In this document: piece after piece, positions 992 to 63,999 of the stretch | How positions within the stretch are numbered: the stretch's first letter is position 1 | Layout of the letters: every line of letters begins with the position of its first letter | DNA from: Ruditapes philippinarum | Taxonomy: Eukaryota | NCBI RefSeq assembly: GCF_026571515.1 | Contig: NW_026867059.1 | Span: 1-64,000, forward strand | Reading direction: 5' to 3' | Length of the DNA stretch: 64,000 nucleotides | The notes under the pieces: model-generated | What the model was told of the DNA's origin: nothing | The model's input: the letters and a program-made list of their open reading frames with translations, nothing else | Databases searched by the model: none | Position numbers and translations under genes: made by a program

Positions 992-1486
992 CTGCGCAGG
1001 TCCGTTTGGAACTTTCTGAGCCGTCTGATACACCTCGCGTTTTGCTTCAAGCTCCTCTTTTCTCTGATCCGGATGAGGATCGCACTGGGGTAGCGACGTA
1101 TCTAAGTGTTCAATAAGATAATGATAATCTGGTCTAATCCACCGGAAGACCGGAAATATGTATATGTCATTCGTTTTTCTATTTTCAACAACAATTTTAT
1201 CCACATACCAGTCGGCACCTAGTCCAGCATTGTCTCGCCAAAATTCCACCCGACAAACATGCCCATCAAAATTTTTTATTTTCAAATCTTTAATAGGAAA
1301 AACATCCAACTGACCACTTTCAAAATCATTACGAAAGAAATTATCTAAAACTAAATCATCAGTGTTATTCCCATTTTTATCATGCAGTTTAATCTTTACA
1401 TTAGCATCTGTACCAGCATGCTTCTTATCTCCAGTCTTTACATAAATCACAAATTGTGCATTTTGCACACCTAAACAAGCACCCAT
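992..1486 (-). CDS. Lipoxygenase N-terminal exon V1 (PLAT/LH2 domain + linker), 165 codons; putative alternative first coding exon
   Basis: ATG at 1486 in context aaaacaATGG, with in-frame TGA 4 codons upstream. PLAT motifs VKTGDKKHAGTDANV, LDNFFRNDFESGQLD, WRDNAGLGADWYVD, FPVFRWI; LOX linker DTSLPQ...QRKEEL...Y...GPAQ. Ends at phase-0 donor CAG|GTATAG (992/991). N-terminus MGACLG. Confidence 0.88.
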
Positions 1487-4400
1487 TGTTTTATTTCAAA
1501 TCCTGTCACTTAAATTTAACTCATTTAATCCATAATTCCAATAACTATGAAATATTTGTCAATTTTTTTTTAAACGTCAATAAATCAATCAAAATTCCGA
1601 TAGGTAAAAGTTTAAGAGCATACACTGTAGTACACAATTCAAATACAGTTGACAAAATACAAAATGACATGCGCTTTTATCTTATCTAATATGTACAACA
1701 ACAGTCCAGAGATCTCGATACTAACTCCGCCTATTCACTGTAATACTGTTTCCAATACTAATTTTGCGGACTTTATAGTAATAATGCGTTTATCATACTA
1801 CCGTAAAAGTTCGTGTTTACGATAAAAGTCGGCGTCCTTTAGAAGTTTTGTCAACTTTAAAATCGCTAGACCATGACGCGTCACAGGTGTATTTATAGAG
1901 TAAATTTTACACACAGGGACTTGTATTTTAGTTAAATGAAATAGTATATTGAATTGAATTGTTGTCAAATAAAAACGAATTTATTTAAACGTAGGAATAT
2001 AAATTTAGCGTGACTGTTCAAACGTACATTAAAAGGGACACTACTGTATATTAGTTAAGTCTGGTAATGTTATACGTTGTTTTTGTTTGTTTTGCGATAT
2101 TAAAATGGGATTTCATTTTAGTTGAAACAAATGGAAATCCTCTGAATTCTCTTCTTTTAAAACTTTTAAGTTAATTGATCTTTAGTGCAATTTATATTTT
2201 GACATACACATGTATTAAATTAATATAGCATATTCGATGAAATTAAAGAAATGCAATTAGAAATATATAACAGTCAAATATATATAGATATATAAATATA
2301 TCATATTTTATTTGATGTTTAATTATTTGCGTCATTAGTGTAGGTTAAAGTTTAAAAGTACGTATAAACTATAAATGCTGCAAAACTACTTAATAGATTG
2401 CTTTTCATTTAGCCATTTAAGCTATATCTTATTTAATCATGAACTCACGTCACCAACGGAACTTTCTCATAAAACAGAACAGAACAGAAGATTCTTCGCA
2501 ATTTAATGGTTACGATAACTTTATAAATAGAAATAGAGTGAGGACAGCCTTTTTATATTTAAGCCAGGTTTTATATTTTAGTTTTATCATTTGTCATTAT
2601 CAATTATTGATATATCACCATGTAATTGCCTATCTTTGGAAGTATATAGCTTATTATTGTCAACATGACAACAACAAAAAATGAGTATAATGTCACTATC
2701 AAACTTTATCATGCTATAAAAGTGTAAAATGTAATTTGACTAAGCGTCTAAATTTCAAATGCTCCATATGTATTATAAAACCTTTCTTGTTTACAAACAA
2801 CTATAATATACGTAAATGATTTTTTTGTTCGATTTTCCGACGTTCAGTTGTTTTTGTTGTTGTTGTTTTGTTTTGTTTTTCTCCAATAAATTCTCTTGAA
2901 AAGAGCTATATTTTGTGAAACTTCAAAACGGTAACATTTCCCAATCCAAAATCATACTTAATCTTAAAATGCACGTGCAACTTTTGGTTCTGTTTTTTGA
3001 CGCTGGCGGCGCAACGCGCACTTTCAGCCAATATCAAAGACCATGTCATCTCAGAGGCGCAATTTTGTTTTAACAAACAAACAAGCATAAATAAATAAAA
3101 TAGATAAGTAAATAAATAAAATAAATTAAAGCTCATCGTTCTTTCCTGTAGTAGACCAACTCGCGTTATTTGTTTCTTTTATTATATATTGAATTATTTT
3201 AACTTACTTATTGTTTCATCTATCTTGAATTAATTTAAGTGTGAACATGACATAATGTGGGATAAATAGTAAAGAAGAATCTGCTATGGGAAAAAAACTG
3301 CGTCTTTAGTTAATGATATAATGTTATTTAGTAAATAATGTCCCATATATAGACTTGTAAATTAATAAATGGACAACTTATCTACTCTTAAAATCAAATT
3401 AACATTCATTGAGAAAGTTATGAATGAAAATACAACAAGGTAAAAAGTAGGACGAATATTTTTAAAATGGTAACCGCAAAGTATTTTATAACAAATAAAG
3501 TAGGATGAATTGATGGGTATTTGTCATAGTTGGGTACATCAGCAAATCTATAAATAGTAACATATTACTCGTGGGAGGAAATTGAAACATGCCCTTTTTA
3601 ATTCATGTTGAATTGCCCGAACATCACGTTTTCTAAGTTTTATTGGCTGACTAGGCGGATACAAAAATTCCTATACGGAACACCTTAATAGATGTACAGC
3701 AGATACGGTTCAGTGACGCACCGTCCTTAATGTGGAAATAAAATCTGAAAACAAGTTTTATTATGGGAAGTCGTAAGCGATTCGATAAAAAAAAGACTCG
3801 TATTTGCGGGTGGCGAGAGGGAACCTTCTCGAAAATTAGTATTGTTGCCCGTTATATCTGGGAAGTAGTAATTTAACGTCTTCCCAGATTACATGGATAA
3901 CTTCAATTTAGCAACGCAGTGATATAGTAAATTAAAATAATGGACCACGATATTTAGTATGTCTTTAGTCTAAAATTAATAAAAAAAGTGAATCCGTTAA
4001 ATAACACAAGTTTTCTGCATATGTGAACCCAATATCACGATAAAAAAGAACACACGTGATGATCATGTAAGTTCATCATCATCATAATCATCATTATCAT
4101 TATCATCGTCATCATTACACGTAATGGTAACATCGTCACGTTATAAATGCTTACAGATCTAGAGCACACATTTAATTTATAATTGATTTTCTCTTTTTTT
4201 CAGGGAAGTTAAATTACATATGTCGTCCTTAAAATCAGGTCAAAATCTGGGGGATATATAACCAGTTTCATATAACAATATATCTAGTAACATATGTCAC
4301 TATATAGATTATAATCTATAACAGAGAGTAAATAAAAGTCTCTGTCTATAACAACTTGTTACGCAACCTGATACATACATTACAGAAACATATAAAATAC

Positions 4401-5811
4401 GCTAGTTTGCATGTCGATCATTCTCTCATCCCCCCTGTATGTCAGCGTTAATTTGTACCTGTATCATCAAACAAAATATCTTAAACTAGTTGGTAATGTT
4501 ACATCAACATTCTTCACCTTGCCCCGTGGCGGGAAAGCAAAGGCTGATCATTGTGAAGTCATTCTACTTTCAACAAAACTAATCTTTTCCCCCCTTTACA
4601 CCTTTCATAGATCATTATCATGCCTTTCTGTCTTTATTTGATATTTTTATTGACTGTACTCATTTCACTTGAAATATATGTTTAGATACTAATATTTTTA
4701 TTAAGAAAAACTCTTCCTTTTGCTTTAATTATTTGTATGAAAATTAAAAAGTAATACCATAAGACGAGGGTTCAAATTTGTCTACAAAGAATGTAATACC
4801 AGTATACACAACGGTTGATTAGAAATATGGTAATTGCTTGATATTAGAATAATATCATAAATACACTTAGTACTCCTTTCTAAGTCTGAATGAAATTTAT
4901 GCTTCGTTCTCTAAGCTCACATTTCCAAGACTGAAACAGTTAAACTCCCAAAATTTGATGATGTGTGGTAAACTTTGCCTAAGCAAAGTTCCATATCCAG
5001 TCAATTTAGCAATATACATTGTAATTTTAGTTAACGCACTGTGCACGTATATGTATACGATTTAACTCTGACACATTTTCAACAGAAAGGTCCCAAACTA
5101 TGATACAACATAAAATATCAAGAACAATGAAAATGGTCATTGTTTGGTGTGTTTTTTTCTTCACCCCTGGTCTGCAGATAAGCCTTTGCTTCCAGTATGA
5201 TCAATACTGCTGGTAGCTAAATTTTAATATTTTAATATTGAAATCCCTTGCAATTTGTATTGACTGTTCTAAATTCAAAATTTGGGCAAATCCATTACAC
5301 ATTCAGCAGTTAAATGGTTAATTAAAACCATGTCTGGATAGGTCAGTGAATGTATGCTGTTTTATATATTCTATGGTAAATCTAGTCGTGTATAAAACAG
5401 ATTTAAGCTTTACTAGATCACAGAACACTTTTTGACTACTAGTGTTTAATTATGAAGATGAAATGAAAGATGGGTTACTTTCTGTTTGCATGTAAGAAAC
5501 AAACCAGATGCCCTGAAGAATCGTTATTAGATGTATCACAGGTGGTAGCTAAAATGAGGCTGTGTACAATCTTCGGATTATTTCCCACCCCATCCCCATC
5601 GACCGTTCGTTTTCATGTATAACATGAACAAATTGTTAAAAATCAGCAGTAAAAACACTAAATTTCTTTGTCATTGTGACCCTTCTAAAATGCGTTACTT
5701 CTGCATACCTTGCACATCAAACTACCATGGCAACCGTATAATAATGAACAACCATCATGGTTCGGAGCTCTATGTGCAATATTTACCGTTTAAATTGCCG
5801 TGAATTATTAT

Positions 5812-6048
5812 TGAGCCGCGTCACGACAAAACAAACATAGTGCGTTTGCGACCAGCATGGATTCAGACCAGCCTGCGCATTCGCGCAGTCTGATCAGGAT
5901 CCATGCTGTTCGCTTACAAACCCTATAACAAGTAGAGAAACTGATAGCGAACAGCATGGATCCTGATCAGACTACGCGGATGCGCAGGCTGGTCTGGATC
6001 CATGCTGGTCGCAAACCCATTATGTTGGTTTTGTCATGGCGCGGCTCA
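5812..6048. mobile_element. Palindromic MITE (TGAGCCGCG... terminal inverted repeats)
   Basis: Ends tgagccgcgtcacgacaaaac / gttttgtcatggcgcggctca with long internal inverted symmetry. Same family at 11400-11550 and 32491-32695. Confidence 0.85.
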
Positions 6049-6075
6049 TACATCTTGAATTATCTCCAATCATAC

Positions 6076-6546
6076 CTGACTAGGTGCTCCTTCAAAATGG
6101 GGCCCAAGTTCATACTTTTGTCTTTTGTCCTCTAATTCCATCTTTCTTTGGTCTGTGTACGGTTCTGTTTGCGGTAAATTGGTATCATAGTTAACAATCT
6201 TATATTTCGTACCGGCTTTTATCCATCTAAACAGAGGGAACTCGTATAACTCCTTTGCAGACGTCATTTTTGTAACCTTGATGTAGTCAACGTACCAGTC
6301 ATCAAGGATACCGGCGTCGTCCCGCCAAAATTCTATGAAATCGACAGACGACAAATTTTTCTGGCGCTTGAAATCAAAATTGTCCAGTTGACCAGTTTCA
6401 AGATCATTTCTAAACATGCAATCCAGGAGTTTTTCTTCCGTAGAATCACCATTGTTGCAGTGCAGTTTTATGTAAACGTTAGCGTCAGTTCCGCTGAAAA
6501 GTCTATCTCCAGTTTTTACGTCAATACTATATGTGACGTCACCCAT
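6076..6546 (-). CDS. Lipoxygenase N-terminal exon V2 (PLAT/LH2 domain + linker), 157 codons
   Basis: ATG at 6546 (MGDVTYSIDVKTGD...); the ORF-track start at 6582 is a GTG. Motifs SGTDANV, LDCMFRNDLETGQLD, WRDDAGILDDWYVD, FPLFRWI, DTNLPQ...GAPSQ. Phase-0 donor CAG|GTATGA (6076/6075). Confidence 0.86.
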
Positions 6547-9006
6547 ATTCGCGTGATAAACAGACGTAACCGTGAATGACACTATATTATTATAAGCTTG
6601 TGTAAATTTCCAAGTTACTACACTTCTATAACTTATACAAATTTTATATTGTACACACTAATATATACATGTATTTCAAAATATCTTTTGTTTAATTCAT
6701 AAAATTTCCTTTCTCGAGTTTTGTTTAAAGTACGTTGTTTCTGCTAACGTACTTATTTATTAAAGGTTTAAAGTCCGGGTAAAACTTTATATGTCTCACT
6801 TCAAATTTCTTTCAGCCAATTAAAAATCAACATCCGTTTTGTACGATGGAACACGCGCGTATATTAGATAACATGCTATTTTATCTTATAAACCTTATTA
6901 GCATGTTTTGAAATATTCTTGATAAGATAGCTTTACAATAAAACCGTTCTTAAATACGACACGACATTACTCAGTTATTACAATTCACATATGATACATA
7001 GCACTAGAACAATCTCGATTTCTCGAGTGCCAAATTTGAGTGCCAAAATTATTTTTTCATTATATACATTTCACTTCTCAAAAAATCTCCTTTTTTCTGT
7101 AATTAATTGTATAGATGTATTATAGCAGCTATCGAAACAGCTTCGTCTGACATCAATTCCTACTAAACGAGGATAATTAAATAAAACACACACTCGTGAA
7201 AATCGAAAGTAAAACACATCATTGGAATTATAAGTCCATTAAATAACAGTGGCAACTTTCGTGTGTATATTAATTAGAGAAACGGAGGATTAATATTATC
7301 CTTGACGCGTGAAAATGTTCAATATCAATAGTAATACCTGCAGAATTATAGCAAATTCTTTCGATATTAATAACACGTTTACCGTCAGGTTTCAAGAGTA
7401 TGTTTCCATAAAACAGACTTATGTGATATCAAACTTTTTCCTGCATAGGTCAATGAAATATCATGCTTCATTACCAATGCAGCTGTTTGTTTCATTTTTT
7501 TAGAAGCGTCTGTTTATTATGTATTGAAAAGAAATGCTGGCTGGAAAACAACTGTTTGAATATCTTCAACTACTAACTATTTTTGTAACTTAAAAGTGCA
7601 ATTATGCACATTTTAAGATGGTTTGGTCATGATGGTATGATTTTTTGCTTTTTTAAACGGTATGATGTAATCTTTTTTATATCAAAGATATTTGATATGA
7701 TATCCTTAAAATAAAGGTATGAACTCATACCAATAGATCCCAGTATTATAAAAGGATGAGATTAAAAGAAATTTAAGGTAAAAGTTGCCATAATATTCTG
7801 TAACTACATAAAAACCACTTTAGTGCCTGGACAAGACACAGAGATGTTCGTCTAACCGCTATTTTCCTACTGGAATTGCTTACTTGCAGAGGGTTTCAAA
7901 AGTGAGTATGTGCATTTTCAGCTGCAGTTTAGTTTACAATAATTTCAATAAATCAAGCATGCATAAAATTATCGTAAACTAATTAAACACGTGTTTAGTC
8001 TAATTTAATTTCAATTTAAACAAGGCTATTAACGAATGACAGGTTCTTGAGCTAATCAGGTCTTTTTTCTCTAGTTGGTTACTTCTGGAAATTCCTGTAG
8101 ATGTTGCGGAAAAATATTTATAGCATATTTGTTTGCCGGTAGTTTTGAAACTAATTAATGGGCATATTTCTACAAAATAACCCAAGAAATTCCGATAGTG
8201 CATAAATGACACGTTCCAATAATAACCAGAAACCAATTTACAGTAACATCCAAATGAAGTATAATAACACTCGTGTTATTTTACAGTAACATCCCGATGG
8301 CATGTATCATTTAACAATAAAACCTTTACCCTATTATTATATTAACCATGGAATTGCTATGCAATAAAGTAGCGATATTCAGGAAAAGTTACCCAAAAAT
8401 CGTTCCGACAGGTATAGATCCTTACTCTTTTATTGGAATAAAAACAGATTTAAACACAAACATTGACATGTATTCTTTTGTTTACAAAAACATTATAAGC
8501 TGTGCTGAATTGCACTTATCTGATCATTTGATTTAGACAGATTAGGGTCTTTTATATAGAGAGAGATATATCAATAGTAAGTGTTGAGATTTGTTACATT
8601 TCAAACGTTATTATATGAAATGCGTTGTTAGTGTGTGTCCAACATTACATGTATAAGCCTAAAGTCATTTAAATAATGTTAATGACTTCACAGATAAAAT
8701 CAGATTTTACCAATTTGATGGCAACGAAAATATGACACTGAACATGTAACTCGAGTTTTGTTAAAATACGAACCGCGGTATACGGTTATATTTATATTGA
8801 CAATTACTCCTACTTTTTATTTAAAATGTAAATCAGACAAGAAATAAACCTGAATTGAAAGTTAAAGCTCGACATTGCAAAATGTTGATTTTAAATGGCA
8901 TTTGGTATTTACCATTATTGCAAATAAACATTCTGATATGAGCTGAAGGTTATTTTCTTTTCGGAACTTGGCCTTTAAGAGAGGTACTACAGTATAATTT
9001 AATTAC

Positions 9007-9474
9007 CTGCGCCGGACCACCTGTAATCTTCTGGCATACAATATAACTGTCTCGTTTTCGTTTAAGTTCATTCCATCTTTGTTCAGCTTCCGGGTCTTGC
9101 TGAGGTAAAGAAGTGTCATTTACCCGGAATATCAAATGTGTTTTTGCAGGAATCCATCTAAATACCGGAAAAGAATATTCCGTATCTTTATCTTTTCGAC
9201 GGACTTTAACATAGTCTAAATACCAAGCACTTCCAAGTCCAAAATTATCTCTCCATAATTCCAATTTTTCAATATTTCTGATTTTAAATTGTTTTTTCAC
9301 AGTAAAATTGTCAATTTGACTTCGTTCAAAGTCATTTTTCAGTATATTCCGCAGTTTCATTTTATCAGTTTTCCGTCCTCCATCACCATGCAATATGACC
9401 TTAACATTAGCATCAGTGCCCGCGTTCTTACGGTCCCCGGTCCGTACTGTGAACACGTAATCCACGGGGTCCAT
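9007..9474 (-). CDS. Lipoxygenase N-terminal exon V3 (PLAT/LH2 domain + linker), 156 codons
   Basis: ATG at 9474 (aaacaaaATGG), with in-frame TAA 4 codons upstream. Motifs VRTGDRKNAGTDANV, NDFERSQID, WRDNFGLGSAWYLD, FPVFRWI, DTSLPQQD...GGPAQ. Phase-0 donor CAG|GTAATT (9007/9006); homology stops at the donor. Confidence 0.88.
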
Positions 9475-11399
9475 TTTGTTTTGTTAAGATGTAACTACTG
9501 GCTGACCTTTTTGTGTTTGTATAGTGAATTTATGATGAATCAATGGTACACCTTCCTAGGTATTTATTTCGTGACACTTTTAAAAATTTGACCACTTGAT
9601 TTATAAGGTAACGATGTCTAGTTAAAACCCACTTATCACTTCGTAGCCTTTGATATTGCTATAACGGCCCCTGGTCACATCACGTCCATTAAGAACACCG
9701 AATTATTGTTGCTAGGGTACGTACATTGTCCATTTTAAATCTATGAATTCCAAAGAATATACCTATTAAAATTTAGGATATTTCACACAAATTTTTATGA
9801 CCTTACAAACATATTTTTATTGACGACAAACAAATATTTCTTTACCCCTAAGTTTGCTATGATAACAACTATGTCAATATGTTAAGCATAATCCAACAAT
9901 ACAATAATTTTAAAATATATCGTCCTTTAGACGTTAATATCCTATATTTACTAAAATACACCACGGATTTACAAGAATATACACGTTTTTTATTGACGAT
10001 TTCTTTTCATTAAATCTAAAGTAAATATGCACTTGTCATACTCTGTATTTCATAAATAGTAGTACGGTTGAAGAACGTAAAATGTAAATACCAGTGCATT
10101 ATTAAGGAAATTTGAAACCACCTTCCATTGTGTTGAGTTCACATCTTTGAAGGGAATTTTTATTTATATTATTACCAACAAACGGACCATATATTCACTG
10201 AAGTGGAAAATATATACATAGTTATTACCATTTTTAATTCATCTTCTTGTCATTGAAATAACTATACTTTTACTGCCGGTGTTATATTATATATACACAG
10301 CAACCTAAAAAAAATATTCAAAGGCCTAAAGCTAATAACTTTCATTCAAGCCTAGTACATGTAGTATATAGTTATATATTCAAAAAATTAGTCTGCGTAT
10401 CGCGAGAAAATAGAAGGAGAGAAAAATAAAAAACAAACACAAACATATTAGTATTAAACAATGACTAATTTTTCTGCAGTTGGAAATTCTAAATTAGTAA
10501 TTGTATTATTAAATATTGTATTTTTTGTGTATATATATCATATGACATACAGGTCATATAATCAGAGAAACTTGAAAACGTTAGTCACGCTTTATGTTAA
10601 AATACTATTAGAAAAATTTCATAATATTTTATCTTTTTATACTATTCACGTGCAAACACTTTATTATTCCTGCAAGGTTCGCGAAAATTTTGCTTTTTTT
10701 ATTAAGAAAAAAAAAACACACAAAAAAACAAAACAACCTTTAATGCTTATCTCGAGGCAACTACAGTAAGTATGCTAAAGTGAATTCTTGAAGCGGTACT
10801 TTTGGGTTAATAGTATGACATTAACATAAATTCTATAATAGGGTTATGGCATCTAATTTCTCGAGTGATCAATCGAGCGGAGCTCACTGAATGATACTCA
10901 ATTTTCATTTAACAGGAAGCTTCAATCGGATTGTCCTCGGCATTTATCTATTATAACCGTATCCGAAGACTGACGGAAGGGGTCGAAAAGTTGCGATTGC
11001 TAAAGCTTGTGCTGGGGGTGCGATGTGGAGGTCAATGTAGAGGAAGAGTTGCGCCTAAAAAAGCCCAATCAAACTGAGCCTGCAAAATTTTGAATTTTGC
11101 CGTTGGTGGGCGTTCTTTAAGTTTTCACTTTTACCAATTTAATTGATTAAATTGTTCAACTTATTGCAAACTTATTGATAATCGTATTACAGATGAGCTC
11201 TGACTTATGCGTTTATCTTGGCTATAAGTTTCATGTAAACAAAAAAACAGATAGCCATACTATCTAATGTAAGCATGTTACTTACATAAATTAGCATAAT
11301 AGATTATTTAAATAAGCGGGACGACCATAAGGTAATGTAAAGGCAAAAGCCTATTCGTGACAAGGACATTGTCTAAACGTAGATTAGTGGAAAATGAAA

Positions 11400-11550
11400 T
11401 GAGCCGCGTCACGACAAAACCAACATTATGGGTTTGCGACCAGCATGGATCCAGACCAGCCTGCACATTCGCGCAGTCTGACCAGGATCCAAGCTGTTTG
11501 CTTACCAACCCTGTTACAAGTAGAGAAACTGATAGCGAACAGCATGGATA
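11400..11550. mobile_element. Truncated copy of the TGAGCCGCG MITE family
   Basis: Left half matches 5812-5960; the right TIR is missing. Confidence 0.8.
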
Positions 11551-11863
11551 TATTTATGGTACATGTATGCGTTATTTCATGTAATACTAGTATTTCAATA
11601 AGAAATCACGTCATTTTATGCTGACATTTATTTGATTGCAATGCATATCCTGGTTAGTCAACAAACAATGAAACAAATACAATAATATGGAAAATATCTG
11701 ACTGATATACTAGTAATTGAATATCCAATCGAAAGTGAATTATATTGTTTTTACAGGAAATTTTAAATATCCTGACAATTAATTTTACATTGTTACTTGA
11801 ATTATACAAGTGTTGCATAATGAAACTACTATAATTCAGATTACACGATGCAGCTTGAATTGT

Positions 11864-12119
11864 TTAAAGCTGCATGCAGATGAGCCAAAATATTTCAAGA
11901 AAATCAAACTTGCGGAAAATGTACTTAGATTTTATGAAAATTAAAAGGATTCAAGTAATAATTTAATGTTAGGTGCAATTAATGCCTGATACAGAAGTAT
12001 TTACGAGTATTTCAATATTTCCACTATGAGCGCAGTATATAAGGACTATTTGTGCATATTTTAACCTCTTTGTTTTGGGTAATTTACGTGGATTGTTAAC
12101 GCCGTTCATGCAGCTTTAA
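11864..12119. mobile_element. Small TTAA-flanked MITE (Kolobok-like)
   Basis: ttaa-agctgcatg ... catgcagct-ttaa inverted ends. Confidence 0.5.
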
Positions 12120-13232
12120 GATTCTTGGTCATATAACAATATATTTAACAAAATAACCTTATTCATATAAGTTATATTATTTCATTCATCAACAATTATC
12201 GAGTTTTTTTTATATGCCATCCGGGTTTTCCGGTGTTGCGAAAACTGGTTGTAGGAAAATTTACGGAAATGAAACTGGCAACTATAAATTAAATATAATG
12301 TAACTTGTAGGGTTATATTAACAATGATGATTTTCTGTTTCAAAGATTATCGTGACGTTCATACAAGTAAAATCAATATAGACGACTATTGTACATATAT
12401 AGAAAAGCTCTACGGAGGTAAAAAAACCAACAAAATAAAACCTGAATTTCTTTTACAGATCAAGACTTAGTTGTGCACTTAAAATGAAAAAAAAATCTGC
12501 AGAAAGATAATGAAGAAATATACTCAGAGTAGAATTGAAAATCTTTTTTTTGCGCGCGATTTTTAGCCGGTTTTGAGTGAAAAAACGTTGCAACGCTTTT
12601 CATTTCTTGTCATTTTGCACAATAAAAGTAAATATTGTAGGAAAACGGAGCGAGGGAATGATCTGATATTTTCACACAAGTTATTAGTTCAGACTTTCAT
12701 GATTCTCAAATGTACAAATGTGTACGAGTTTTAAGTGGCGAGACAACCTTAAATGTACATCTATGCAATGTAGCCTATATTTAAGCCTTACGAACACTTG
12801 GTTAGCGTCTTTATTAGACAATATATATGTAGCTATTATGTTACTTATATTTGACCTTATTTTTCTCAGTTTGGTTTCATGATTTAAGTCCATTTTACGA
12901 CCATCTATATCCGATACGGAAAAAAGACCCTTCAAACTGTTACTATATTTATACGATAATCGCTTTTGAACATGGTCCTTCAAAAGAAATAATGTGATCA
13001 ACACGATATTAGGTGGAAACAAGAATTTAACACCGTTTATTTCTATTTTAGACCAAAGTAAAACACCCCTTTGACACAAAAGATGAAATACGTCTATTTC
13101 TGGACATAAACAAGCGTGTATGGAAACATAATTATGTCATAAAGAAATCTCTCTGTTGAAATACGAAACGCAGGAAAGTTACCAGACAGTTTTGAAGTCA
13201 TATTTTAGGCTTAAGCCAATTTAAGAAAGAAC

Positions 13233-13233
<1 letters not shown>

Positions 13234-13284
<51 letters not shown>

Positions 13285-13318
13285 TATAATAATAATTATA
13301 ATAATTATAATAACAATT
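13234..13318. repeat. (AAT)n microsatellite
   Basis: Direct inspection; it explains the poly-Ile ORF 13198-13395. Confidence 0.95.
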
Positions 13319-15645
13319 ACGAATAGAATCTTCAAAGCAGGCATAAACAGTAGTGTATTTGCACCAGGTAAATATTCTATATAACAAAAAGTCACTTTGT
13401 GCCTGACATTCTGGTCAGATACGATTTTTGAGTTCCCATTTGTCCGGAAATAATGATTCCGCCGGATAAAACAATGTATACTTTCACTTTACTATGAAAT
13501 TTGGACCGGCATTTTTTGTTAAAATTACAAGTTGATGGTTTTATATTAAATTTTAGAATTTGTCTCCTTTTCTTTGAATTTCCATACGTCATATCAACAA
13601 CAACCAGTGAATGTACGATCTTTCCGGAAACGGAAGTATACTTCATAACATAACATTGAACCGGATATGACTATTTTCGGGCACGGAAGATATTCATCTA
13701 ATGATGAAGTGTAGACGGAACAAAAAGCTCCCACAAAAAGCTCCTGTGGTCAGTAAGTGAACTAATGTAAACATGTACATGTAAACGGATAAGCATAAAA
13801 AATTGATTTAACGTCAAGACATAAACTTATACATCCTTTGTTTAAACAATAGAAAGTATGTTTATCAATATACACTGAATTAGCCAATTGATTTGTAAAC
13901 ATTGTAATAAGCTCATTGTTAATCATTATTAATTAATTAACAGTACAACTCATATGAAATTCATATGATATTGTCTGATAAGTGGGTTATGCGCGGGGAA
14001 AATTCCATGTATCATCATCGAACAGTCTGTACTTCACATTGGAATTGATTTTATTCAATGTAAAAACACATCTTGTTTAACTTGTCTTCATAAATGTAAC
14101 AATATTTCAGTTTATTTATTAACAATATATAGGTTTTATATAAATTACAAATGATAAGTGAAAAGGCTACGCTTTATTCGTATTTTTAATACTTAAGTAC
14201 CGGCACTCATGATTCTCAAGAAAAATTTCATTCATAATTTTTTTGTTATTTATTGCAACAACATATGCGTTTTAAATTTGAGAATGTCTTGCGAGGCGAG
14301 TATGATAAATTTGGAAAAACCTAATAAACCTTTTATAAAAACACTGTTTACCAAATGATGACATTAATTTGTAAATGCTCGACCTTTTCCGTGAAATTTC
14401 GGATATGTACGGTAGCATAAATGGGACATCAGATATATTTTATCTATCAAAAGCGCACGCGATAGCTTCAACGACAACTACTATCGTGCGCACGTGGCAG
14501 AAAAAAATATTTCTGATGGCCCCATTATGCCACCGTAGTACGGAAACAAATTCGCTGTAATTCATCTCACTGTCATCTCATTTATAGTAAGTATCGAAAT
14601 GAAATATGTAATTGTATATGGAAATTAATATAATGTTGTATCATAGTTTGGGGGCATTTCTGTTGAAAATGTGTCAGGGTTAAATCGTATACATATACAT
14701 GCACAGTGCGTTAACTGGAGAGCAGGTATTAATTACCTGCACTTCAGAGCATGCCCATTGATTGGCTCATTTTTGTTGGGGTTTACTTATTGTCACTGCA
14801 GAGAAAGGAAACGCGGTAGAAATATCATATTCAGATGCTCGTTCATTGGTTACTTTTTCTGGGGTTTCATATTGTGGCAACAGGGAACGTGTTTTTATGT
14901 TTGACTATGATACAAAAGAGAAAGAACATCAAAACACTCGGCAATCGGATTAATACTCGTAGTACGCCCCCTCGTACAAATCGGATAGCCTCGTGTTTCG
15001 ATGCTCTGTCTATTACTTATATAGTTATGTTTCACAACTCCGTTTGTGTGTTTACTCTATTACATACAACAGGTGTCTTATTTTGTTTTTTTATAACACA
15101 GGTGTGCATGTAATACAAGATAATACGAGGAAATAGGTTCTTCATGTATGTAGTGTTATTTTTAAGCTCCATATTTCCAATAGTTCAACAGGGAAACATG
15201 CATTAACCTCTGTTATAGGTAACTAGACCACAGAAATATCAATACAGACGTAGGGGGTATTCTGTGAAATCGTAAGAATATTAGCCAATGAACTTATAAT
15301 GTAGCTCGAAAATATTTTATTTCTGATATTTCCAGAATTAATGCATGTTCAGCTCTGGCGTATATATGCTAAAAATAAAGCGCACACGCAAAAAAAATCC
15401 CGATGTAACTATGGAAGAAACACTTCACAACATGGTCACTTTAGGAAAACGCTGTTTATCGTATGCATTAGTATTGAAGACCAAATGCATAGAAGAGATA
15501 GTTTGTATCAAGATGGGCTATTCGTTTCAGACAGATAAAGAAATGAGTAAAATGTGCTGAAAGGATCGCATTTTCAAAATAACTTCCTGTTTAATCATTC
15601 GAAACTAAAATCGTTTGAAATGCGAATATAATGTCACAGCTTTAC

Positions 15646-16131
15646 CTGGGCAGGGCCATCCGGAACCTTTTGCGCAACTTCGTATTTCTTTCGCTTCTTC
15701 TGCATCTCCTTCCATCTTTGCTCAGCCATAGGATCCTGCTGGGGTAACATTGTGTCGTGCAGACGAAAGAAATGATGTACGTCTGCTTTCACCCATCTGT
15801 AAATTGGGAAACTATATTCTGTGTCAGAGCCCTTTTTCTTGATAATTATATAGTCACAGTACCAGCGGCTTCCAAATCCAAAGTTGTCTCGCCATAACTC
15901 GATTTTCTCAATAGTTTCGAGTTCGGCTTGTTTTTGAATCACAAACTCGTCAATATGTCCGCATTCAAAATCATTTTTGAAAACATTATGCAGACGAATT
16001 TTGTCCGTCTTGTTCCCGCGGTTGTCATGGAATATAATCCGTATGTTGGCATCGGTGCCGGCCCTTTTCCGGTCCCCTGTTCTAACATGCACAATGTAGT
16101 CCGTTTTCTTATTCACTGTTGTCTCAGCCAT
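15646..16131 (-). CDS. Lipoxygenase N-terminal exon V4 (PLAT/LH2 domain + linker), 162 codons
   Basis: ATG at 16131, with in-frame TAA 2 codons upstream. Motifs VRTGDRKRAGTDANI, NDFECGHID, WRDNFGFGSRWYCD, FPIYRWV, DTMLPQQD...DGPAQ. Phase-0 donor CAG|GTAAAG (15646/15645). Most similar to V3 by eye. Confidence 0.88.
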
Positions 16132-17442
16132 TCCTTACAATCTCACAGAAATACAATCGATATGTTTATGAAGAAAAGAAAGATGAGATTCTCAAGAAAA
16201 ACTAACCACAGATAAAATTTATATTGTCACTCGAACTGTATAACATAAAACTAAACAATGTCTTTATATTAACGGACAAAAAATCGTCTGCAGTTTGCAA
16301 TTTAAATCCTTTGTAAACTTCTACACTAACGTACAATCCAACCTTTATGAACTCACTTTTTACAATGCTTCTGAAGTTTGATTTAACAGTCTCCCGGATA
16401 AATGGATAAATAATTTCTTAAGTTACCAGTTTTGTTTTCAGTTAAACAATGCAATGTTTTAAGTCCGTCAACGTGTGCTACATTTGTAAAGTATAACTCC
16501 GGGTATTGTTTTAATCTCGACAAATCAGCCCGTCCACTTTAAACCATCACATCTCAAGCATGTCCGCGTTATTTCGTGTTGTATACCTTACTTTAACACT
16601 TCAGAGCCAGCACTTTTGCGCACATACAACTATTCAATGTACTAATTGCTAGCAATTTATTAATAACACGGCTCAGAAAGTCCATTTGCCACTAATCACA
16701 TATATATTTATATACATATAATTTCATAATTGTAACATGTTTGATGTTTCTGAACTGAACACTGTTGATTGCCAGTTATTTGCGAGTTGATTTTTTTTCC
16801 GCAAAACATATATCCTCAGGGTGAAACCTTAACACGTCACAAAAATGTTTCTAGTTGTTCTTTTCACCGACCTCCTTGTAACCTGATCTTTCTTCAAATA
16901 TGCATATTATGCAAATCAAAATTTGTTACATTAGATATTTTATATACACAAGTCATATATAAATGACAGTAAGATGCAGATAGTATTTATTGAGATGACA
17001 AAGTGGTCACGTATCCTATTTCCTATATAAGTGTTGTTTCAAGTACTTTTATAACATTTCTTACATTCCGGAACACACGAACGTATCATCTCACCATTCA
17101 TAAAACCCATCATAATCTTGATAAACTTTTTTTCTGAGAAAAAAACCATACACATTTCTAGTACCTACTCTACTCTGTTACTGTAAACCATAGCACCTAA
17201 AGGCCTCAACAGACGGTAGGATTTAGTTGTACAGCACTAATTAGAGATAAGATGTACAATTTTCAAAGCTATACAACACTTGCATTCAGACGGTAATTCT
17301 ATACTGTAAGAATCTTCTGAGGTTTCCCCTGAAAAGGATCCCTTTACATTGATTCTTTACATACTTTTCTAACTTAATACTTTTTTTCGCCATGAGTAAT
17401 GATTGAAACACATCCATTAAAAAATATATATTTTTTTTTTTA

Positions 17443-17582
17443 ATGTGAAGCCTGACCGAGACTCAAACCTGGGACCCTCGGAATACCGTACTGTGGCTCT
17501 ACTGACTAAGCTATGTGGCCGCCTACAAATTACCTCCCCTCCCCAAGTTCATGTAATTAGAGAACAATTCAATACCGTGACA
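17443..17582 (-). mobile_element. Solo or partial LTR of the tRNA-containing miniature LTR element
   Basis: Minus strand reads tgtcacggt...aattgttc...tagcttagtcagtagagcc...ggtattccgagggtcccaggtttgagtc...caggcttcaca, matching the LTRs at 33219 and 51170. Confidence 0.65.
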
Positions 17583-19482
17583 TAATCATTTTCGGAATAA
17601 TTTGGGATTCGAACACAACACAACTTTGGGTCTCCTGAAGAGTTTTTCAACATCATTTTTACCCCATCTTACTACTTTGTTTACCTTTTAGCCCTAATTG
17701 TTCTGGAATTTCATTCATTACATCCATTATCAGGAGATAATTTGCTTATCTGTTACTTGTCATTGTGGGAGGTCTGTAAAAATCGGTACGACAAGATTTT
17801 CAAAATAGAACATGTCCTATCCCTTACATCTCGACATAAGGTTTCCAAAATCAAGAAATAGTAGCCTTCACACATTAAGATTTGCCTGTACATCTTAGTT
17901 TTAATTGGTGCTGTACTTCAAAATCCTACCGTCTGTTGAGGCCTTTAGTAACCTCCGCACTCACTTACTCACTTCATAACAAGATGATGGCTTGTAAGTT
18001 AATCATGTATACAAAAATAAATATGTCAGGTTATCAAAAAAAGCCTTCTTGTTTATTTATCCGGAAGTATTTACAGCAGACGATTGAAGAACATCACACC
18101 TAGGTAATAAAGTGGAGTTTCAGAAAATATTTAGAAGATTGCTATGGCATGATAAAACAATAGTTGTCTGTGAATATTATCCTCTAATTACAACACGTTT
18201 TTTTTTATCGAATCAAGCAATAATAGGAGTGTACTCTGGATCATTACAAAACAGAACATGTTTGATTACATTTAAGCTGTACAATTTCAACCGTGTTGCA
18301 AAATCAAAGTGGTATTCATCTTCAATTTCGTTTGAATTACATATCTGACTTTCTATCGTTTTGGATATTTGTGAATCTTACACTATGAGTTGAAATACGT
18401 ATTTACATCATAGGTATGCTAAGGTTTTGTGAAGTGAATTGATATAAGATCATTTGCTTTTTAATTTACTTTTAATTAGTCTTCATTGACGCGATTATGT
18501 TCTCTGTAAATATTTAACATTTCATTATTAGTTCAGAAGAACATATCTCTGTTTCAAAAAATAATATACTGATTTTTAATTTGTTAGCAATAACAATATT
18601 ATTTTCATATTATACGTGACCTCATTTGCAATTCTTTTGATGTGACTGCTATCTGCAGGTGAACGTTTTAAGTTATAACTATTTAGGTATCAAATAAATA
18701 ACTAAATAAAAATGAAACTGTATTAGAGATGAAAATTAAATTGTCGGAAAAAAAGAAACATTTTCAAAGCATTTCAATTATTACGCATGCTTTTCATTAA
18801 TTCACATTTAGACAATTGTTTACACAATTTTAAATGATCAATAATTCACATCAAAATTTTGATAATTATATTTATTTATAATGAGTGGTAATTTTACAAG
18901 AAACTTAATTTCTTCTTTGACAAGCAAACATTTATTTTTAAGACAAATTTATAAAATGTTTAATAAAACAGATTTCTTATCTCCAAGTTGACTACGATTT
19001 ACACTATCACCCTACATTCCTTTGTCAAGATTATAACTCTCAATGTTAATGTATGTATTTGGGTTAGAATCCTTGATGATCTCCTTTTTAAGAAATCAGA
19101 TATTTAATGTTCATATTATTCAAAACAGATAACGCCAAGAAAGTAATAGCTATAAAGTATTCAAATTATTACAGGTTAAAACAATATATAAACCCATAGG
19201 CAACAGACAAGGGTTATATAACATACAGCCCATCAATACACGGTCATATAGCCCGTATACCAGAATACCAGACGATTTTATTATGCTTAATAGCTTTCTT
19301 CGATCAAAATAAAAATAAAATATATATAATTGAAAACATTGTAGCAACTGTTAATGTCGTCCTATAACCATTAGCCTGCCACTGGCAACTGAATATACAT
19401 ACCCATGTCACCAGTGCAGACCAAGATCAGCTGGCACATCCATGTCGTGCCGGCTGATCTTGGTCTGCACTGGACGTTGTTC

Positions 19483-20830
19483 AGAACAGAACAGAACAGA
19501 ACAGTTTATTATACACATGTACCATAAGTCGACAATCATCATACATATAGATAAATAAATTGAACCTATAATAAAATGTCACAACGGTAAAATCAGCACA
19601 TATCACAAATTCATATTTTGAGAGGATGAACTGTATTTAATTACATTAGTATAAGTAATTCTATAAGTTCTATAAGTACAAGTTTAATATAATAAGCTAG
19701 GGTTTTCAGAATAATCTTTATTTTTGTATTTAACACGATAATAACGTTTAATATATATTTTGTCTATACTTATATTATTACAATGAAGAATAATAGAAAT
19801 AACTTCAGTAGAATTTCAAATATTTGCATTGTAAAGACGTTTCGTCAGTACCAACAATACATATAATATAAAATGGAAACTATAAATTTAATGTGAGTTC
19901 GACAGAAAAGAAAACTTCCTGTAACTTGAACCAATTTATCATCTTGTTCAGATGTTTATGCTGTACATTAAGAAAGTATTTCAATGAAATTCTCAGAACC
20001 ATAAATTTCTGCCGCTTTTAAGAATTTACCCAGGTAAGGAAATAAAGTACAACTCCATCCGTCTTATTTGACATGAGAAAAAATTAAGTTCCGTATCTTG
20101 CATCAAAATGACTGATAAATTTGTTTTGTTAAGATTTGGGTTATATAGCGGTGTGACAAGCTTGAAGTGTTTAACATGGACTTGAGTGTTTCTAAATTCC
20201 AATGAATATTATTACCTTATAGAATAGCCAGCTGATAAATACGTCCAATTTTGAGATAGCTAGATAACAAGCGTATCCGGCAACACTTTCTCATTTTTTG
20301 TCCTTCTTCTTTTTGAAGAATTTCTTAAAGGTATACTATAAGTATTAGAAAAATGATTGATAACTGCTGAACAGTCTCTATGTAAATATTAAATTGACAT
20401 TTTTTGACTTCACACACAGTAGATATATCATGTTTCAAATTCTAAACATTACAGCTGGTCCACACAATGAATATATATATTTGACCTGTAATAGGGAGCT
20501 CAGCTTCCCATACATAGTTTATCTATTCATTTATTCAATTTAGACAAATTCAGTAAGACCTTATAGATTTAAATAAATTTCTGTGAGTAAAATATTTCAA
20601 TAAGGATGAGAGAGCATAGAAGATCTTTAAAAAAGTATCCGGGTTATATTCAAATATATATGACTCCAAACACATTTGAAACTTTAAAAAGATACTCAGC
20701 CGAAGTCAAACGTGTTATCTTGCATAGGATAAGTTACTACTAACCATGCTAACCGCAAACAGAACATTTTAATCGTCCTCAATAATTTTATTTCAGTTCA
20801 TTTTACCCGCAATGTTTTTCCCCATTAATT
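19483..20830 (-). pseudogene. Highly degraded LINE (L1/Tx1-like) ORF2 3' end with (CTGTT)n tail
   Basis: Minus strand shows frameshifted remnants resembling GGLKM...LAWL (about 20745-20780) and FKLxHRYITxN (about 20140-20170), and ends in aataaa(ctgtt)n at 19483-19510. Confidence 0.35.
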
Positions 20831-22978
20831 GTTATCTTAGATTTAAACAATATTACTTACATTATTTGATTTTAATCAAAATGGAATTTGATTTGAATAG
20901 AAATTTAATATAAAACAAAGATTTAGTAGATACTGTACACTAATTCCACGGAGAATTTTGCAACTGTAAATTAGTCGAAAAGATCGTTTCAACTGTGTTA
21001 TGCCCGGTTCGAAAAGAGAATATTATGACTAGAACAGCTTAGAAGAGAAACCCAACCGAACGCAAAAGTACCAAAAAGGCGATCTGTCATATTTAATTTC
21101 ATATATTTATTGAAAAGCTGTTAGAAACATCTAGAAAATATCATTATTGTGTTTTTATATTTATTCTGATTTGTATCTTTTCCCAACACTTTTTGCCACA
21201 GAGGTAGCTCTTCTACAATCGCAACTACTCGGCCCTTTCCGTCAGTCTTCGGATAAGGACCTCGAACACAATATAGTATGAATACACAGAACGGATGCGG
21301 TATTTCGGTCTAACCTGCGCTAAGAAACTAAACATGTAAACAAATAGTAATTTAATGCTGGGAGTTTTTGACAAGTTTATTTCTAATAAATGTAGTAAAA
21401 AGTCCACCTAAAATAAGTGAAATCATAGGTAAAAAAGCAAACAATACATTATTTATATATTTATTATTATGGTTGTAGAAACCGAAAGTACTAAAAACCA
21501 ACCTGTTGACATTTATTCGTATTTGTTTAAAATTGAACATCAGTGGGCATATTTAAATTACAAATTGTTGTCAGACATATTTTCAAGCAAAAGAGTATCG
21601 GAATTTCAAATATATACATTCGTTTAACATTATCTCTGTTTCTGTTTACATCTGAAACCACGTGGTAGAACTACTTTCAATCCGTATTGTTTCCGAGGTT
21701 ATTATAGATAATAGCCGAGGCAGTTCCAAATGGCTCTTCTAAAGTATCAATCGAATAGGCTATTAGTGTTAAAATGACCAATGGAAATTCTGCCTATATT
21801 CATTTCTTAGCGGAAATCAAGGCCGAAAAAAGTAGTGTTTACCTGCTGTTTTACTTATTGTAACTTTACATTCATTTTTGTGCTAGCTAGATATATAAAA
21901 GTGATATGTAAGGTATAGACATTGTCGCATTGTGAGATGGGGTTTAAATTTGTTTTACGTTTGCTCAGCATATTTGATATAAGGAGAAAGATAGTAGGTT
22001 TTTATTTCAAATAATGTACATGTATTTTCAAAATATTTATTATCATTATTAACTCTTTCACAAAGTGACAAGCCTTTCCACTATGATATAGCCAGAGCAG
22101 CCTGCGCGTCAGTGCAGTCTAAGCAAGCTCTGTACGCACTGCCTAACATATAATTTAGATGGATTCATTGACAATACATGTATATTTAGTAGAGCAGGCT
22201 GATTTAATCTGTATGACAAACAATAGCTTAATTTAAAAAGCGATATACATGTAGCTTAATTTAAAAAATGACATTGTAGCGTTCTGCTGGCGACAAATTA
22301 ATCAAACAACTAAATTATCATTCAATTCAATAATTAAAAACTGTTCGTATTATATGATATCATACATAGTTCCTATATGATGTACAGACTTAGCCTACAA
22401 TATAACGGTAGAGTATGATTTATCTACATTGCTCTTTTAATATCTCATTTTATGTAGGCTACAATGCTTTTTTCTGTAATGGCGTGCTGTTTATCGTTTT
22501 ACCCCTAAAACTGTGCCTTTTATAGAATAGCGTTAGACCAGTATAACTAAACAGAGTGCGTGATCATTGATTCCTACACTTTAAAGCGTTGAAAATTGTG
22601 TACAGCTCAAGCCGGTGCTAAGGGGGGGGGGGTTTGGGATGTTGCACGTTTTCATTATCCCTTAATTTTAACTTTCTGATATAAAGATCCCTAATGAAAG
22701 ATTCCAAAGCAGGATTTGATATTTTCTGAAACGACAAAGCGGTCTAAATAAATTCAAAGCAACTTACATAAAACAAGAACTTATCAGATTTTTAATGTGA
22801 TAATATTGAATCTAATCTACATCTAAACCTATTGGGAAATACGCATACACTTAAAGAGAGGTCTTACTCATAGATACGGTGGTTGAAATTTCAAAAATCA
22901 TGCGATTAAGGGTTATTCAAAGCCTAATTTGGATAAGACCACCATTTTATTTAAGACAGTCATATATAGATATCTTAC

Positions 22979-23713
22979 CTGAGCAGGACCATCAGGTACT
23001 TTCGTTGCACACTCGTAAGCACGCCTCTTCTCTTCAAGTTGCTCTAGTCTATTTTTAGGCTCAGGATCAAATTGCGGAAGGAAATTGTCCATATGATGTA
23101 TGATATAGTGTTTGTGCGGTTTAATCCAACGGAAAACCGGAAACATAAACTGCTTCTGGTTTTCTTCAGCCTCGATTTCAATGTAATCCAGAAACCAGTC
23201 TGAAAATCCTATTCCGGAATCGTCCCTCCATATTTCTATCTTGTGAATGTCGCCTAAATTAGAAACATTTTTAAGCTTGAACTGATCCAGCTGTCCCCTT
23301 TCAAAATCATTCCGAAAGAAATAGTCCAAGTTTATTGGTTTTGATTTATGCCCAGATTCACTATACAGAACAATGTATATGTTTGCATCCGTACCAGCAT
23401 GTAACTGGTCCCCTGTTTTGACATTTGCAACATAGTGCACTTTTCCAGATCCAAAAAGTCCTTTACTAACACATGTACGTGAAACACGTGTTGTATCTGT
23501 AGACCGGAAGTTCCTATGAAATGGCAATCGCGTGGCATTACTCTTGAGGATTGTACTGGCAGTGAAAGTAGTCCTAACTAACTCCTTGTCGACAGATTCC
23601 TTTAAGCGATGCTTAAATAGTTCATGTCTAAAGTCACAAAGACTGTTTCTCGTTAAAGTTGTTAATCCATGTCCTACTTTGTGACACCGAGTGCCGAATG
23701 TCTTAAAAGACAT
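22979..23713 (-). CDS. Lipoxygenase N-terminal exon V5 (about 90-aa N-terminal extension + PLAT/LH2 domain + linker), 245 codons
   Basis: ATG at 23713, then a basic S/T/R-rich extension. Motifs VKTGDQLHAGTDANI, LDYFFRNDFERGQLD, WRDDSGIGFSDWFLD, FPVFRWI, DNFLPQFD...DGPAQ. Phase-0 donor CAG|GTAAGA (22979/22978). Candidate acceptor tttcatttcag| just upstream (exon would start at 23766). Confidence 0.87.
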
Positions 23714-62385: not shown

Positions 62386-63999
62386 TTATTTTGACAGTTT
62401 GAAGAGTTTTATAAAGTTACTTTCTTTTAAAGCACGGTTGCTTGTGTACAATGTACATGTTTCAGCAGACCAGTAGACAGCTTGAGGGTATTTTATATCC
62501 TTTACAACAATCTGTCCTTCACTACAGTCTCCTGATATCTCTTCTATGGTATTGTTGTCTATACAAACAAACACAGTCCCATCATCTGACATTGTCAAGC
62601 CACGTGGACTGGCTGTACAAACATATTTACCTGTCACCTCACACTGCCAGTTTAACTTGGTAACTGTTTTTAATGAATAATCAGATACAAAGATACAATT
62701 GTCACTTGTTGTAATATAGTTTGGATTTTTGAAAATATTTTCATCTTGTATTGTCTGTAATACAGTGCCATTGATAAGAAGGATTTGAATTTTAGCTGGA
62801 TTGAGATATGACACCACCATTTTATCTTTATGACAGCTTATACCATAACATTTTCCGTCAACCTGTAGAGTGTGCTTCTTCCTGAGATTATTTCTAGAAA
62901 CAGAAAAGAACTGAATAGTTTGATGAAATGGCAATGTGACAGCAACTTCATTTTGTGAAACTGTTGTGACATCATAAGGTTCACTATCAAAGTTATGCTG
63001 AGCTTGAACAGACTTTCTACTGATATCAACTATTTTTATGGCCTTGTTGTTATAATCTGTGATGATAAGAAGATCAGGAGTAAGGAGAGTCATTCCTGTT
63101 ATCCAGCAATCAAGTCTGTCTTGTGATGTTTTGATACCGATTTTATCCATTTGTGAACATTGTCTGGACCTCAAAGCAGGAGATAATATCCTACCTTTCA
63201 GTGTCCCCAGTGACTTCTCTTTTGCAAGAAGATTTGATATTACCTCATTTGGTTCAAAATTATATTCTTTGACTTCAAATTCTGAGAGCTTAGAAACACT
63301 ATGTTCATATTCTTTTATCATCTGTTGTGCATGTTTTAGTTCCATGAACAAATCATTGGCTTGTTTGGAAGTATTAAGATTTTTAATGACATCAGAGGAT
63401 GACTTAACTGATTTAAATACATCTCGACATGCTGTTTCTACAGTCTTCAGATCCTTGACATTGTCTTCTTGGATGACTTTTGCAGCCTTTTTGACTTGTC
63501 TTTCCATTTCATCTAGTCTTTGGTTGATTTTTGCTCGGAATTTCAATATGTCTGTCAATGCTTCTGTCAAAGACTTGATCGATAACTCATTCATTTTCTT
63601 CATGTCTTGAAGTATTTTGCTTGATCGCTCAGTCATGTCGTTCAAATCCTTCAATACATCTTGATACTCTGTGCCATTGATGGTTTGGCCTGAAATGTCA
63701 GGTATATAGTTGACATTGCAAGATGTTACTGTATGCTCAAGTGTTACACAAACACTGCAAAGTAGAGCCTTATGATCATGGCAGTAAAACTTGATCATCT
63801 CAATGTTGTGTTTAGGACATGGTTTTGTGAAATTATCTGGTTGCCTTGGAGTTACAGTTGAAAGAGTCTGAGGCATGTTGGTCTTATCAAGTAATGCATG
63901 GTGTCTTGACAATGTGTGTCTTCTGTGGACGGTAAAACATGTTTCACACAAATGCTCTGAACAGTTTGTACAATAGCCATGGGCAGGAAGTCTAGGTCC
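62386..63999 (-). CDS. TRIM-like protein: B-box x2, coiled coil, NHL-like beta-propeller (5'-truncated by the window edge)
   Basis: Frame is open to the window end (GPRLPAHGYCTNCSEHLCETCFTVHRRHTLSRHH = B-box 1). CPKHNIEMIKFYCHDHKALLCSVCVTLEH = B-box 2. Helical heptad region follows, then propeller repeats ITDYNNKAIK, PYDV, CYGI, VSDYSLKTV, PRGL, PQAV. No intron over more than 1.6 kb. Confidence 0.9.
   Translation of the reverse strand, partial: GPRLPAHGYCTNCSEHLCETCFTVHRRHTLSRHHALLDKTNMPQTLSTVTPRQPDNFTKPCPKHNIEMIKFYCHDHKALLCSVCVTLEHTVTSCNVNYIPDISGQTINGTEYQDVLKDLNDMTERSSKILQDMKKMNELSIKSLTEALTDILKFRAKINQRLDEMERQVKKAAKVIQEDNVKDLKTVETACRDVFKSVKSSSDVIKNLNTSKQANDLFMELKHAQQMIKEYEHSVSKLSEFEVKEYNFEPNEVISNLLAKEKSLGTLKGRILSPALRSRQCSQMDKIGIKTSQDRLDCWITGMTLLTPDLLIITDYNNKAIKIVDISRKSVQAQHNFDSEPYDVTTVSQNEVAVTLPFHQTIQFFSVSRNNLRKKHTLQVDGKCYGISCHKDKMVVSYLNPAKIQILLINGTVLQTIQDENIFKNPNYITTSDNCIFVSDYSLKTVTKLNWQCEVTGKYVCTASPRGLTMSDDGTVFVCIDNNTIEEISGDCSEGQIVVKDIKYPQAVYWSAETCTLYTSNRALKESNFIKLFKLSK

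Follow-up and report, generated by a model that had tools for sequence, protein, structure and literature searches.

The window analyzed here, a 64,000-nt stretch comprising bases 1-64000 of a contig (C15546) of the Ruditapes philippinarum assembly, carries five exons (V1 to V5) that each encode a PLAT domain. We consider it very probable that these are alternative first coding exons of one lipoxygenase (LOX) gene and that they share one catalytic body. The gene itself appears to be the orthologue of the multi-isoform gene annotated as 'allene oxide synthase-lipoxygenase protein-like / 5-lipoxygenase-like' in other heterodont bivalves. The idea of one LOX gene with a catalytic body common to several PLAT first exons had been put forward in an earlier note made from the letters of the window, and three lines of evidence speak for it. 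The first four constant exons that match such a body occur singly in the assembly (on contig C12933), isoform sets with an identical body are annotated in other animals, and the V exons correspond one to one to the PLAT classes of Mya arenaria. We favor a shared body, for which the comparative isoform evidence is the strongest support. Genome searches covered the entire Ruditapes assembly (1.41 Gb in 15,874 contigs), with exons probed one by one; a RefSeq protein with 94% identity also points to Ruditapes philippinarum.

Five PLAT exons with matching donors

All five exons lie on the minus strand. V1 (992..1486) has 165 codons that encode the initiator methionine, the PLAT domain and the LOX linker; its product begins with MGACLG and the exon closes with the donor CAG|GTATAG at position 992. 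V2 (6076..6546, 157 codons) begins with MGDVTY and closes with CAG|GTATGA at 6076; its entry in the list of open reading frames (ORFs) opens at a GTG at 6582, and the ATG is found at 6546. V3 (9007..9474, 156 codons) begins with MDPVDY and closes with CAG|GTAATT at 9007. V4 (15646..16131, 162 codons) and the first coding exon V5 (22979..23713, 245 codons) have their donors at 15646 (CAG|GTAAAG) and 22979 (CAG|GTAAGA), respectively. All five match the Pfam PLAT model (PF01477) with 70.9-88.4 bits, against a cut-off of 23 bits, and the E-values are 2.6e-20 for V1, 4.9e-22 for V2, 2e-19 for V3, 2.5e-20 for V4 and 7.5e-25 for V5.

Every one of these exons is intact, with an ATG, a canonical donor and a frame free of internal stops. 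The length from ATG to donor is divisible by 3 in all five, and each closes with CAG followed by GTA. The encoded sequences have a common ...GP(A/S)Q end, after which the frames diverge and read V*, V*, VIKLY.., VKL* and VRYLY.. in V1 to V5. In-frame stops stand upstream of each ATG, at a distance of four codons in V1, four in V3, two in V4, 10 in V5 and 37 in V2. The donor of V3 and the ATG of V2 are separated by 2,461 nt, and pairwise identity among the five exons is 42-59%. Consequently, the array is made of tandem paralogous exons, each with its own start codon and all with a donor of the same phase, which is the make-up of a set of variable first exons. The earlier note had described much of this anatomy, and its account holds throughout: the ORFs and Pfam matches confirm five co-oriented PLAT exons, the phase-0 CAG|GT donor codon is common to all, similarity collapses past the donor exactly as it had been read, stops do stand 2-4 codons upstream of V1, V3 and V4, and the gap between V3 and V2 is indeed close to 2.5 kb.

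The domain architecture of the five exons is that of a lipoxygenase N-terminus. The closest solved structures are those of coral 8R-LOX, coral 11R-LOX and human 5-LOX (2FNQ/3FG1, 3VF1 and 3O8Y; E-values of 1.6e-18 to 1.5e-26). A profile built from the five exons aligns with these three enzymes through the linker, up to profile position 152-154 of 162, and the isoforms of related species run from the linker directly into the lipoxygenase catalytic domain (PF00305).

Catalytic sequence was sought on the contig of the window in three ways, with the PF00305 model, with full-length Dreissena and Mya proteins in the genome-wide searches, and locally with tblastn under permissive thresholds. On C15546 these searches matched the five V exons and nothing else, and the permissive local tblastn recovered no copy in the window of the 15-residue constant exon described below. 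The absence of catalytic LOX sequence between the PLAT exons, which had been claimed from inspection, is thus borne out by all three types of search, and the catalytic exons that would mark the array as a row of separate tandem genes were not found on the contig. Note that the contig end lies 991 nt downstream of the V1 donor. Since the window starts at base 1 of C15546, any constant exons to the left of that base must be located beyond the end of the contig.

Matching constant exons on two other contigs

Body exons that match were found on the minus strand of C12933, a contig of 17,479 nt. The first constant exon, exon 2 of the gene, occupies C12933:9478-9522; it is 45 nt long, encodes IKVMPADEAFSFDYK, and is bounded by the acceptor ttttatttttcag|ATC and the donor AAG|gtaatt. 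Probing with a Dreissena isoform, which matched this multi-exon body at 60-92% identity, placed further constant exons on the same strand at 8127-8255, 2578-2676 and about 2005-2150, and seven more body exons on the plus strand of C86 (11,173 nt). Exon by exon, the segments on C12933 and C86 are 57-92% identical to the Dreissena and Mya body. In genome-wide searches constant exons 3-5 were found in one copy in the assembly, and exon 2, which is too short for searches of that kind, was located by local tblastn on C12933.

The acceptor of exon 2 (C12933:9522) is in phase 0 and therefore fits the phase-0 donors of the V exons. The peptide that follows it begins I-K-V-M-P-A-D-E-A-F, as anticipated by the earlier note, which had predicted the motif V-x-x-L/I-P-x-x-E-x-F after a phase-0 acceptor, and the Ruditapes exon 2 peptide does not differ from the residues with which the constant part of Mya arenaria begins. 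Upstream of exon 2, about 8 kb of C12933 remain before the contig end, and the V array exits the start of C15546 on the same strand as the C12933 body exons. The single copy of exons 3-5 and the phase-0 exon 2 are what is expected of a shared constant set, although the 3' part also occurs in additional, degenerate copies.

Isoform sets and one-to-one classes in other animals

RefSeq isoform sets from other animals provide the comparative evidence. Within each set a C-terminal body of 507-512 aa is identical and only PLAT and linker vary, with the break at ...Q|(I/V)K..P.DE.FSF. The Dreissena polymorpha isoforms X1 and X3-X7 (XP_052225502-10) differ up to ...GPAQ and are then identical over 507-511 residues, and the Mya arenaria isoforms X1-X6 (XP_052793618-23) share a body of ~510 aa. 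Sets of this design were also recovered from the mussels Mytilus galloprovincialis and M. californianus (X1, X3 and X4), the oyster Crassostrea virginica (two forms), the scallops Mizuhopecten (X1-X5), Pecten (X1-X5) and Argopecten (X1-X4), the abalone Haliotis rubra (X1-X2) and the sea star Patiria miniata (X1-X3). Isoforms annotated in Littorina, Lineus, Tubulanus, Tachypleus and Physella turned out to be of other kinds.

The Mya isoforms carry exactly the five PLAT classes of the window. V1 is 84% identical to Mya X2 and 76% to Dreissena X3, and the values for V3 are 77% with Mya X6 and 66% with Dreissena X7. V4 matches Mya X3 (80%) and Dreissena X4/X5/X6 (73-74%) and groups with the N-terminus of a Mactra LOX. 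V2 corresponds to Mya X4 (62%), in which MGDVTY starts at the same ATG, and V5 corresponds to Mya X1 and Dreissena X1 (55-56%, with 56% for Mya X1) and to the protein P0172, to which it is 73% identical over the full length. Overall, identity between orthologues amounts to 56-84%, compared with 42-59% for the paralogues of the window. In the phylogenetic trees, the sequences of Ruditapes, Mya, Dreissena and Mactra pair one to one in well-supported clades, and the V1 class also holds members from oyster, mussel, scallop, unionid and abalone. In Dreissena the V4 class is represented by three exons, and none of the isoforms seen belongs to the V2 class. The scallop and sea-star arrays look at least partly lineage-specific.

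Two further observations concern the junction between the variable and constant parts. A public sequencing-run assembly (Logan) of a relative holds a 2,310-nt contig with an ORF of 744 aa (P0020), in which a V5-class exon is joined to the body. An ORF of that size leaves no room for introns on a contig of that length, which accordingly looks like a transcript. Compared exon by exon, its body mostly shows 85-100% identity to the exons on C12933 and C86. Furthermore, dozens of genomic ORFs from other species, called without regard to introns, end at the same Q|V position (CAG|GT) and continue into unrelated tails, so the exon boundary is widely conserved.

Some mollusc annotations contain PLAT-only 'genes' of 160-240 aa. 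These include Patella caerulea SNE40_016418-016420, Sinanodonta ACJMK2_032132, Pinctada FSP39_009132, Tegillarca KUTeg_008642 and Mytilus coruscus CAC5371111, with the protein identifiers P0261, P0266, P0200, P0242, P0252 and P0259, and they lie next to LOX genes according to the order of locus tags. These, too, are probably alternative first exons that the annotation left unjoined.

Alternative explanations of the array

The same five proteins would result if the V exons were mutually exclusive and were spliced from a single upstream promoter or non-coding leader, in which case splice-site choice would take the place of promoter choice. A plausible acceptor, a pyrimidine run followed by cag (tttcatttcag), does lie ~55 nt upstream of the ATG of V5, before which there may be a non-coding leader exon. 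However, no convincing acceptor with a pyrimidine tract was found just upstream of the ATG in V1 to V4. TATAAA-type motifs lie 90-135 nt upstream of V2, V3 and V4, but such motifs are common by chance in DNA with 68% A+T and are uninformative here. Finally, the known variable-exon arrays of the clustered protocadherins and UGT1A have one promoter for each variable exon. We regard a common leader as unlikely.

It is very unlikely, and a good deal less probable than a common leader, that Ruditapes uses just part of the array, such as the proximal and most conserved V1, with the others being orphan duplicates that have ceased to contribute to mRNA. The locus does belong to a fragmented region of the assembly, and degenerate LOX copies exist elsewhere in the genome, which is what lends this alternative some appeal. 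Against it stands the intactness of all five exons, each with its ATG and canonical donor. The V exons are moreover much closer to their Mya and Dreissena orthologues than to their own neighbors (the 56-84% and 42-59% given above), a relationship that implies long purifying selection on each of them. Near-identical intact copies of V3 and V4 (95-96%) are present in other public sequence data, and all five classes are used in the RefSeq isoform models of Mya.

That the array represents five stand-alone PLAT genes reading through the donor, or exons of a LOXHD1-like poly-PLAT chain, is barely credible: gene callers blind to introns and some annotations do list PLAT-only proteins of 156-240 aa, but the ORFs reach a LOX-specific linker that aligns with coral 8R/11R-LOX and human 5-LOX to about residue 150-169, similarity ends exactly at CAG|GT in dozens of species with unrelated tails beyond, in Dreissena and Mya the PLAT-only models coincide exactly with N-terminal parts of full-length RefSeq isoforms, and a chain is excluded by individual ATGs that follow closely on in-frame stops, as the earlier note had argued from those stops.

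Five alternative first exons on one catalytic body remain the reading that we favor, and several points must be weighed against it. The RefSeq isoforms come from automatic modelling. A search of the protein database for spliced Ruditapes proteins, full-length or partial, gave none with a V-type N-terminus, and the short matches prove to be ORFs called without regard to introns, which run past the donor. Fifteen sequencing runs hold 16-28% of the sequence words of window:900-6600, a stretch of which V1 and V2 make up ~17%; the label of these runs as RNA is only a guess, and their word content is weak support for expression. At the level of the assembly, no overlap was found between the ends of C12933 or C86 and the start of the window, and we infer the adjacency of C15546 and C12933 only from orientation and uniqueness. 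The body is also incomplete: near C86, one of its internal exons and its two final exons could not be located.

A last point is the copy number of the 3' part. Three contigs, studied through loci of 3 kb, carry partial copies of the body: C400 (at 40-42 kb and 62 kb), C2709 (24.7-27.5 kb and 41-42.7 kb) and C11717 (98, 103, 110 and 206 kb). These copies are degenerate, several of them having in-frame stops or missing parts of exons, and from their sequences they look like dispersed pseudogene fragments. The expectation of a single set of catalytic exons stands for exons 3-5 and is less certain for the 3' part, of which degenerate extra copies exist. As a separate observation, the last two exons on C2709 look intact and may represent the true 3' end of the gene.

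Modules of the five classes and a possible mechanism

The classes differ in their N-terminal and loop features. MGxC, a well-known context in which Gly2 is N-myristoylated and a nearby cysteine palmitoylated, is present in the 11 closest database relatives of V1 (73-88% identical) and in the majority of those farther away, gastropod sequences among them. The V1 product is therefore probably N-myristoylated and S-palmitoylated, modifications that would provide a constitutive membrane anchor. V5 has a basic N-terminal extension of ~80-92 aa that precedes PLAT and linker, comparable to the 76-81 aa of Mya X1 and Dreissena X1. Across the V5 class, extensions range from 53 to 94 residues, with a median of six basic residues and one acidic residue among the first 30. 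In its composition the extension resembles an organelle (mitochondrial) presequence. V2, V3 and V4 carry the PLAT domain without any such addition, and their loop sequences differ; MDPVDY is retained in relatives of V3, and members of the V4 class start with MA...DY. The NDFE loop, a Ca2+ ligand site in 5-LOX, reads NDFE in four of the V exons and NDLE in V2.

The following mechanism would account for these patterns. Each V exon would supply a start codon, a complete PLAT domain (a beta-sandwich that binds Ca2+ and membranes), the linker and a phase-0 donor. In any given transcript one V exon would be joined to the 45-nt phase-0 micro-exon, and ~13 further constant exons would then encode the iron-containing catalytic domain. 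Five isoenzymes with a common catalytic core and different N-terminal modules could be produced in this manner, and the likely outcome is one active site delivered to different membrane or organelle destinations. We infer the splicing in Ruditapes, the adjacency of the contigs, the use of one promoter per exon and the targeting roles from the patterns described above.

In its widest form, the proposal would be that of an 'address-swapping' LOX of bivalves, in which one core would be directed to different membranes or organelles through a choice among complete PLAT modules that differ in their targeting device (a dual lipid anchor, an organelle presequence, or distinct loops that bind Ca2+ or lipid). 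The modules would have been maintained one to one since the common ancestor of venerids and myids, and scallops, mussels, abalone and a sea star would have evolved similar arrays repeatedly from this exon structure. The case for this extended proposal is evenly balanced. If true, address-swapping would be an undescribed route to diverse oxylipin synthesis in invertebrates and at the same time a natural domain-swap experiment for PLAT.

Other lipoxygenase genes of the assembly

Several LOX genes of the assembly have a catalytic domain made of one exon of ~450 codons, and the catalytic exons outside C12933 and C86 (on C7244, C1955, C3555, C8647 and C12936) adjoin N-terminal exons of their own. 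The genes on C7244 and C1955 are directly preceded by a PLAT domain of their own, encoded in two exons. The genes on C8647, C3555 and C12936 are members of a venerid subfamily in which the N-terminal domain is too diverged for the Pfam PLAT model and an own linker exon adjoins the catalytic exon. All five were rejected as partners of the V exons, given that each has its own N-terminal exons. This includes C12936:694096-695379, a 'partial' RefSeq model 25 kb from the contig end that was considered as the constant body and proved to be a single-exon domain of the venerid subfamily with its own linker exon upstream. The venerid-specific genes form a cluster on C8647 (92-173 kb) and C3555 (8-47 kb), which includes the proteins P0001, P0005 and P0007. 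Several copies are arranged in tandem or inverted, at least one of them has stops, and the N-terminal beta-sandwich is diverged.

Elsewhere in the window, an intron-less ORF of 521 codons (62386-63951, minus strand) matches a B-box zinc finger (E-value of 2.8e-6) and, weakly, an NHL repeat. These matches suggest the TRIM-like B-box/NHL family, and the ORF has no relation to the LOX array.

Significance and comparison with known systems

Full-text literature searches did not find a paper on alternative PLAT first exons in lipoxygenases, and the one candidate paper dealt with LOXHD1-like transcripts only. The design is, however, already modelled by the automatic annotation of NCBI in at least 10 invertebrate species. 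The suggestion of the earlier note that the architecture is undescribed for lipoxygenases is accordingly right with regard to published papers and has to be qualified with regard to annotation.

The role of PLAT in lipoxygenases (membrane choice, Ca2+ response and allostery) is usually probed with artificial truncations and swaps. The V array would offer five natural PLAT modules on one core, conserved across distant clams and with recognizably different targeting signals, which would make localization and lipid binding of the individual isoforms directly testable. RNA-seq studies of bivalve 'lipoxygenase' in immunity, stress and reproduction may sum or confuse isoforms that have different destinations. 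Furthermore, PLAT-only 'genes' of molluscs, such as Dreissena DPMN_1596xx, the 'AOSL-like' of Mya and those of Patella, Pinctada and Tegillarca, are probably first exons of this gene that were left unjoined.

Comparison with other PLAT-containing genes helps define what is particular to the array. LOXHD1 resembles it in having several PLAT-coding units in a row on one strand. Unlike LOXHD1, each unit of the array has its own ATG, in-frame stops upstream and a LOX linker, and there is no single reading chain. Coral 8R- and 11R-LOX and human 5-LOX have the architecture of PLAT, linker and catalytic domain that is proposed for the V exon gene. They differ from the array in that each gene has one fixed PLAT, and we know of no alternative PLAT exons for any of these enzymes. 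The multi-isoform LOX genes of Mya and Dreissena are direct orthologues of the Ruditapes gene and have the same exon boundary (...GPAQ | IK.MPADEAFSF). Their isoforms are modelled on chromosome-scale assemblies, whereas the Ruditapes gene is split over several contigs and is not modelled as one gene.

The closest parallels in organization are UGT1A and the clustered protocadherins, in which variable first exons are spliced to shared constant exons. Like the V array, these systems consist of tandem paralogous first exons with individual start codons, each of which encodes a whole module, with donors of the same phase and, as proposed for the V array, one constant set, and in all of them the paralogues have been kept distinct over long times. 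What sets the V array apart is the nature of its parts and its size: the variable part is a PLAT domain that binds lipid and Ca2+, together with putative targeting signals, a dioxygenase catalytic domain forms the constant part, and the array is small, with five variable exons.

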